Source: Pelomyxa schiedti (lineage: Eukaryota; Protista; Evosea). From it: DNA of 64,000 nt. The first letter of the stretch is position 1, and each line of letters starts with the position of its first letter. A model generated the notes under the pieces. That model was not told where the DNA came from, made no database searches, and saw only the letters and a program-made list of their open reading frames with translations. Below are positions 10,702 to 12,427 of this stretch, one piece after another. Both the position numbers and the translations under genes were made by a program. The stretch covers positions 72,981 to 136,980 of the forward strand of contig JAHLWZ010000693.1 of the NCBI GenBank assembly GCA_020536535.1. Reading direction: 5' to 3'.

Positions 10702-12427
<1,726 letters not shown>

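Follow-up and report, generated by a model that had tools for sequence, protein, structure and literature searches.

The nearest described counterpart of the enzyme considered here is the large thioredoxin reductase (TrxR) of Acanthamoeba castellanii, AcTrxR-L (Leitsch et al. 2021). Its database entry ends at a UGA that is followed by GGT TAA, and a SECIS element was predicted in the 3'UTR; tRNA-Sec and eEFSec have also been reported from Acanthamoeba (PMC8038987). Mammalian TrxR1 (TXNRD1; PDB 1H6V, 3EAN, 2J3N) has a Gly-Cys-Sec-Gly tail. In mammalian mRNAs whose selenoprotein carries a C-terminal selenocysteine (Sec), TR1 included, proximal stem loops (PSLs) have been reported to open the 3'UTR (PMC6844570). 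Entamoeba histolytica, which is of the same lineage as Pelomyxa, was reported to have a small bacterial-type TrxR only; this low-Mr enzyme performs the same role, NADPH-dependent reduction of thioredoxin, but it differs in fold class and size and has neither a C-terminal redox tail nor selenium (PMC8038987). The Sec trait is scattered across Amoebozoa (PMC4561486), and Sec machinery is present in the anaerobic protist Spironucleus salmonicida (PMC6397501). We found no literature linking Archamoebae, including Mastigamoeba and Pelomyxa, with selenoproteins or selenocysteine. Thioredoxin and selenium are not mentioned in the P. schiedti genome paper (PMC8887013), nor is selenium in that of Mastigamoeba balamuthi (PMC8136499). 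The Sec-containing TrxR is a well-known enzyme type, but for Archamoebae it is apparently unreported. From work on Entamoeba and Mastigamoeba, archamoebal antioxidant systems have been characterised as thioredoxin-based, without glutathione-based pathways.

We analysed 64 kb of DNA from Pelomyxa schiedti (the window), the last part (bases 72981-136980) of the 137-kb contig JAHLWZ010000693.1 in assembly GCA_020536535.1. For P. schiedti the assembly and the transcriptome each have a BUSCO completeness of about 82-83%. A first-pass annotation of the window had proposed a hidden selenoprotein, a TrxR ending Gly-Cys-UGA-Gly-UAA. It had also supposed that the host might be an anaerobic archamoeba and had drawn a contrast with Entamoeba; the source is such an organism, and the contrast is in the literature cited above. 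We conclude that the P. schiedti gene for a cytosolic, animal-type, high-Mr TrxR is very probably a genuine selenoprotein gene. This reading follows from an intact spliced gene with all catalytic motifs of TrxR1, from the alignment of UGA-GGU-UAA on Sec-Gly-stop, from conservation of the tail and from a conserved hairpin with the SECIS consensus.

Both AcTrxR-L and the Pelomyxa protein (57% identical) are amoebozoan high-Mr TrxRs with a database entry cut at the UGA and GGT TAA next. The Acanthamoeba SECIS has been reported as type 1, at 282-355 nt beyond the stop codon, whereas that predicted in Pelomyxa is of type 2, has a GUGA core and starts some 150 nt past its stop; Acanthamoeba is aerobic and Pelomyxa anaerobic. 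Mammalian TrxR1 (~56% identity) aligns with the Pelomyxa enzyme from end to end and has in common with it the CVNVGC disulfide, the HP...E dyad, the Gly-Cys-Sec-Gly tail and, in the case of TR1, a predicted PSL. The mammalian SECIS core is AUGA, in contrast to the GUGA of anaerobic Pelomyxa.

Gene structure and public annotation

The TrxR gene was modelled with five exons (Table 1), separated by introns of 82, 50, 44 and 44 nt which all have GT..AG borders. Intron 1, the longest, contains long T runs (10884-10962, + strand). The frame runs through 494 residues to a Cys codon, then UGA, Gly and stop, giving 496 codons with Sec and Gly. Positions 12407-12427 read AAG GGA GGA TGC TGA GGT TAA. The first-pass annotation had the codons right, and its start for this span, 12409, is merely the last base of the AAG codon, a trivial offset. 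The last exon matched human TrxR1 with an E-value of 1.8e-50, the alignment ending on Cys497 of 499, and the whole annotated protein matched rat TrxR1 (1H6V) with an E-value of 1.3e-181, residues 10-494 lying on 4-497. Since both alignments run up to Cys497, Sec498 corresponds to the TGA and Gly499 to the GGT.

Pfam matches to Pyr_redox_2, Pyr_redox and Pyr_redox_dim gave the class I pyridine nucleotide-disulfide oxidoreductase architecture. The CVNVGC disulfide and the His...Glu dyad (HP...E) near the C-terminus are both kept relative to the rat enzyme. Judged by sequence, these features, the Gly-Cys-UGA-Gly-stop tail and the SECIS-consensus hairpin in the 3'UTR make this a high-Mr TrxR of the TXNRD/TrxR1 type, in agreement with the animal-type assignment first made. 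A low-Mr bacterial-type enzyme as in Entamoeba (~35 kDa, with no interface domain or redox tail) is ruled out by the 496 residues, the Pyr_redox_dim domain and the Cys-Sec tail.

In the NCBI entry 'thioredoxin reductase 1 [Pelomyxa schiedti]' (494 aa, CDS 10717-12421) the UGA was taken as the stop, as had been expected of automated annotation, and the deposited protein is without its predicted catalytic Sec-Gly. Truncation at the UGA is a general artefact among TrxR database entries: 113 of the best 120 database relatives, mammalian TrxR1 entries included, are recorded as ending ..GC, and the last residue of the query coincides with the end of most of the top 150 cluster representatives. A profile made from TrxR exon pieces and the Mastigella sequence was poor, but it recovered the annotated Pelomyxa protein.

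Table 1. Positions of features of the TrxR gene and its 3'UTR, and of other SECIS descriptor matches, counted from the first base of the window
Feature	Position	Strand	Basis or remark
High-Mr thioredoxin reductase gene	10717..12427	+	Gene model, NCBI CDS, match to rat TrxR1 (1H6V)
TrxR exons (five)	10717-10880, 10963-11170, 11221-11740, 11785-12005, 12050-12427	+	
N-terminal redox-active disulfide, Cys-Val-Asn-Val-Gly-Cys	10991..11008	+	Translation; aligns with rat TrxR1
C-terminal redox centre	12416..12427	+	TGC Cys, TGA Sec candidate (12419-12421), GGT Gly, TAA stop (12425-12427)
Strongly structured RNA domain	12420..12545	+	Starts at second base of the candidate Sec UGA; ~125 nt
Outer stem, GAGGU with ACCUC	12420-12424 with 12541-12545	+	Includes two bases of the UGA
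Stem A, 11 bp, ACCUCCCCUUU with AAAGGGGGGGU	12429-12439 with 12523-12533	+	Invariant between Pelomyxa and L007
Long hairpin B	12446-12518	+	Against L007, both partners differ in 6 of 8 aligned pairs, with pairing kept
Type 2 SECIS-like hairpin	12578..12649	+	MFE folds, descriptor, comparison with L007
SECIS helix I, 7 bp, UGUGCUC with GAGCACA	12578-12584 with 12643-12649	+	
SECIS 5' core, GUGA	12587-12590	+	
SECIS unpaired AAA	12605-12607	+	Inside AACAAA
SECIS ministem, UACC with GGUA	12608-12611 with 12617-12620	+	4 bp, 5-nt loop
SECIS 3' core, UGAU	12636-12639	+	Homology with L007; alternative register UGA 12633-12635
Loose-descriptor match	8952-8994	+	False positive
Loose-descriptor match	53823-53882	+	False positive
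Loose-descriptor match	60033-59992	-	False positive
Loose-descriptor match	56252-56204	-	False positive
Loose-descriptor match	1555-1512	-	False positive

Conservation of the tail beyond the UGA

We took the DNA of the six distinct closest relatives (L007/L008, L009, L010, L006, L003 and L004/L005). The tail is listed as GGC TGA GGT TAA in L007/L008 (JGI, 74% protein identity) and in L010 (Logan, 61%), as GGC TGA GGT TAG in L009 (Logan, 69%), as GGC TGA GGG TAA in L006 (Logan) and as GGC TGA GGC TAG in L003 (ENA). All six have the order Cys-TGA-codon-stop, and the codon after the TGA is Gly in five of them (L003, L006, L007, L009 and L010), which read Gly-Cys-TGA-GGN-stop with the Gly codon varying between GGT, GGG and GGC and the stop between TAA and TAG at fixed positions. 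Such synonymous variation of the Gly codon and of the stop, without any shift in position, indicates a translated tail and not 3'UTR.

The sixth tail, in an uncultured eukaryote TrxR homologue (L004:3466-3489, ENA; L005:1909-1932, Logan), is unusual: it is Ser-Cys-TGA-CAT-TAA (TGC TGA CAT TAA from the Cys codon) and would read Cys-Sec-His. A canonical-looking AUGA...AAA...GA hairpin was seen downstream of it. Among 15 other annotated genes taken from the Pelomyxa contig, UGA is the ordinary stop in six, which argues against a genome-wide reassignment of UGA.

A SECIS-like hairpin in the 3'UTR

A SECIS was expected from the first-pass reading, and a SECIS-like hairpin was found downstream in the 3'UTR (Table 1), with 165 nt between the UGA and its GUGA core, or 168 nt if counted from the first base of the one to the first base of the other. 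The structural definition applied was an [A/G]UGA...GA non-Watson-Crick quartet between helices I and II, an unpaired AA(R) at a distance of 9-17 nt past the core and, for type 2, a ministem; the predicted fold has a GUGA/GA quartet, helices I and II, an unpaired AAA and a ministem. Its stability, from RNAfold MFE values, corresponds to a z-score of -3.2. The internal loop has only 2 nt on the 5' side of GUGA and helix II is irregular. On the 3' side of the loop the sequence UGAUGAU (12633-12639) contains two overlapping GAU, making the register of the 3' core ambiguous. GUGA_AA SECIS elements have been documented in the green algae Chlamydomonas and Ostreococcus and in a sponge, Amphimedon (PMC3473315). 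The Pelomyxa hairpin resembles them in the G before the UGA of the quartet, the unpaired AA(A) and the type 2 form, but it comes from another lineage and differs in its 2-nt 5' internal loop and its tandem GAUGAU with two registers.

A strict descriptor called for a helix I of 6 bp, for [A/G]UGA and GA, for a helix II with no fewer than 9 of its 12 pairs formed, and for a suitably spaced AA. It matched only once in 128 kb (both strands), at 12587-12635, where 0.5 matches are expected per shuffled window. For the TrxR UTR alone the expectation is ~0.001, a figure which is indicative only, the descriptor having been written after the candidate was seen. A looser, fold-based descriptor gave five other matches in the 128 kb. 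We regard these as false positives, since no plausible gene end with an in-frame UGA precedes any of them.

The element of the nearest relative, L007, was then compared with that of Pelomyxa by a gapless scripted alignment, MAFFT having misaligned the short SECIS segments. The 72-nt L007 element aligned without gaps, with GUGA, ACAA and UGAU kept. All seven pairs of helix I are retained, six of them by changes on both sides (compensatory); if the elements are instead aligned by their shared GUG/CAC, helix I shows three compensatory pairs and one additional pair. Folded independently, the two elements gave the same architecture, with different registers of helix II. In L009 there is an AUGA-type element with an AAAAA bulge. 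We consider this comparative evidence, i.e. conservation in L007 and covariation of helix I, to argue more strongly for a SECIS than the descriptor match does, and the expectation of such an element is to that extent borne out.

Covariance models did not recover the hairpin. The Rfam model SECIS_1 (RF00031) had no match in the whole window at gathering thresholds, and none in 601 nt or 101 nt of the UTR at E-values up to 10. As controls we used the protist TrxR elements of L003, L005, L006, L007 and L009, of which only that of L006 was found, at 29.8 bits and so below the gathering threshold of 35. Because the model misses four of the five controls, its negative result for Pelomyxa carries little weight. 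A model built from the L007 element alone also failed to recover the Pelomyxa one, with default filters or with filters off, which we attribute to the excessive specificity of single-sequence models and to the differing helix II registers.

These results bear on whether the UGA might be a fossil, that is, whether Sec decoding was lost and the UGA is now a real stop for a 494-aa enzyme ending in Cys. By analogy with the truncated mammalian and Acanthamoeba enzymes, such a form would be inactive toward thioredoxin. The public annotation does stop at the UGA, the window and UTR have no Rfam SECIS match, and Entamoeba, from the same lineage, has a small TrxR only (PMC8038987). However, five of the six relatives retain GGN and an in-frame stop directly behind the UGA, as a dead tail would not, the SECIS-consensus hairpin is kept with compensatory changes, and in three archamoebal genera the rest of the gene is intact, every catalytic motif included. 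We therefore hold a fossil UGA to be improbable.

A structured RNA domain beginning at the UGA

Between the coding sequence and the SECIS-like hairpin lies a second structured element, which begins within the UGA itself (Table 1). Its predicted fold has a z-score of -4.4 in Pelomyxa and -7.9 in L007, with -4.9 for the corresponding hairpin of L009, and none of 200 shuffled sequences folded as stably as the Pelomyxa domain. In six of the seven Sec-TrxR mRNAs examined, a stable stem begins 9-14 nt beyond the U of the UGA. As modelled, the domain resembles a PSL in that a stable, conserved stem opens the 3'UTR beside the UGA. It shares with the mammalian PSL, or Sec redefinition element, this placement by a penultimate Sec codon, but it is unlike it in its length of ~125 nt, in an outer stem that takes in part of the UGA, in the 11-bp stem and in the long inner hairpin (PMC6844570). 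By analogy with mammalian PSLs at C-terminal Sec codons, the domain probably modulates recoding.

The same domain could be taken to drive read-through by near-cognate decoding of the UGA (e.g. as Cys or Trp), independently of a SECIS and without selenium. The conserved structure would suit this reading, being very stable (z-scores from -4.4 to -7.9) and beginning ~10 nt beyond the U of the UGA, a spacing typical of elements that stimulate read-through. The hairpin with the full SECIS consensus, a separate element, is however conserved as well, and to our knowledge a Gly-Cys-X-Gly tail encoded with UGA has been the Sec form in every characterised case. PSLs, moreover, are known to accompany SECIS-dependent recoding where the Sec codon is C-terminal (PMC6844570). 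Read-through of this kind is thus very improbable, and we retain Sec insertion as the preferred reading of the UGA.

Phylogeny and origin of the gene

The closest named relative is from Rhizomastix libera (EukProt, 59% identity). Mastigella eilhardi has a TrxR homologue too, and the predicted proteins of both these archamoebae end ..GC. A TrxR phylogeny was among the checks suggested at first pass, and a maximum likelihood tree was made of 24 TrxR sequences. Pelomyxa grouped with the environmental L007 (support 99/94) and Mastigella with the environmental L009 (97/94); all four came together with 100/99, and Rhizomastix joined this clade with 93/91. Acanthamoeba and Balamuthia formed a separate clade (98/98), the relation of which to the archamoebal clade is unresolved in the tree. 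No sequence was nested within animals. The archamoebal clade indicates that the TrxR gene is archamoebal and, as far as the tree goes, is inherited vertically within Archamoebae, which argues against contamination. In Entamoeba the large TrxR was presumably lost. The Mastigella prediction (P0007, EukProt) is without the GGTCVNVGC segment, has an odd composition and sits on a long branch; these oddities may be an assembly or isoform artefact.

That the TGA is a sequencing or assembly error, or the contig that of a contaminating eukaryote, is hardly credible: the assembly does come from single-cell genomics with a decontamination step (PMC8887013), but transcripts obtained independently, in two JGI samples and in one Logan run, likewise have TGA followed by GGT and a stop, the 137-kb contig contains ordinary eukaryotic genes, and the TrxR groups with Mastigella and Rhizomastix.

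Other genes in the window

Upstream of the TrxR gene, and ending (~10387) just 5' of its promoter region, is a gene for a predicted 2037-aa surface protein (1-10387, + strand) with Laminin_G_3, LRR and many teneurin-type EGF repeats. One 978-aa ORF of the window matches 'hypothetical protein Pelo_8846 [Pelomyxa schiedti]' at 100% identity. The first-pass annotation expected the genome to encode a complete Sec machinery, for which tRNA-Sec, SPS2, PSTK, SepSecS, eEFSec and SBP2 would be needed; within the 64-kb window no tRNA (ARAGORN) or Sec-machinery genes were found.

On the opposite strand NCBI has a gene for a 219-aa protein (12465-13215, - strand), the second exon of which (12465-12768) covers the TrxR 3'UTR and the SECIS region. 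By means of a 91-nt intron (12769-12859) the gene model bypasses the stop at which a 155-aa coiled-coil-like ORF would naturally end, and so gains this exon. In L007 there is no antisense ORF at the matching position. The model is suspect because the added peptide resembles translated UTR and because L007 has no such ORF there, and it is probably an annotation artefact.

A multi-exon gene at about 37259-37955 (- strand; L001:8047-8743) encodes a 149-aa peroxiredoxin of the PrxQ/BCP type. It was considered as another place for a hidden Sec and rejected, since it is a Cys-type PrxQ with the active site DETPGCTAEAC. The protein is likely to be a downstream client of the thioredoxin system.

Discussion

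In the mechanism that we propose, the SECIS-like hairpin would be bound by an SBP2-type protein, which would recruit eEFSec with Sec-tRNA(Sec) to the UGA at 12419-12421. Sec would be inserted and Gly added, and the UAA would end translation. The Cys-Sec pair, on a flexible tail, would then accept electrons supplied by the CVNVGC/FAD/NADPH centre of the partner subunit and would reduce thioredoxin, and reduced thioredoxin would feed peroxiredoxins, for which the Cys-type PrxQ in the same window is a candidate.

More tentatively, the free-living Archamoebae (Pelomyxa, Mastigella and Rhizomastix) might retain a working Sec system that was lost in Entamoeba and of which TrxR is the ancestral client, and the 125-nt domain at the UGA might be a lineage-specific recoding element, acting together with a short-loop GUGA SECIS to insert Sec two codons before the stop. 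As a whole we think this possible but would not favour it at present. Covariation between Pelomyxa and L007, in the SECIS as well as in the proximal domain, provides defined targets for the study of Sec insertion next to a stop codon.

If the Sec-TrxR is common to Pelomyxa, Mastigella and Rhizomastix, strictly anaerobic free-living amoebae would need selenium and would keep a whole recoding apparatus for its use. The parasite Entamoeba would then have lost both the Sec-TrxR and this apparatus, a further gene loss on the way to parasitism.
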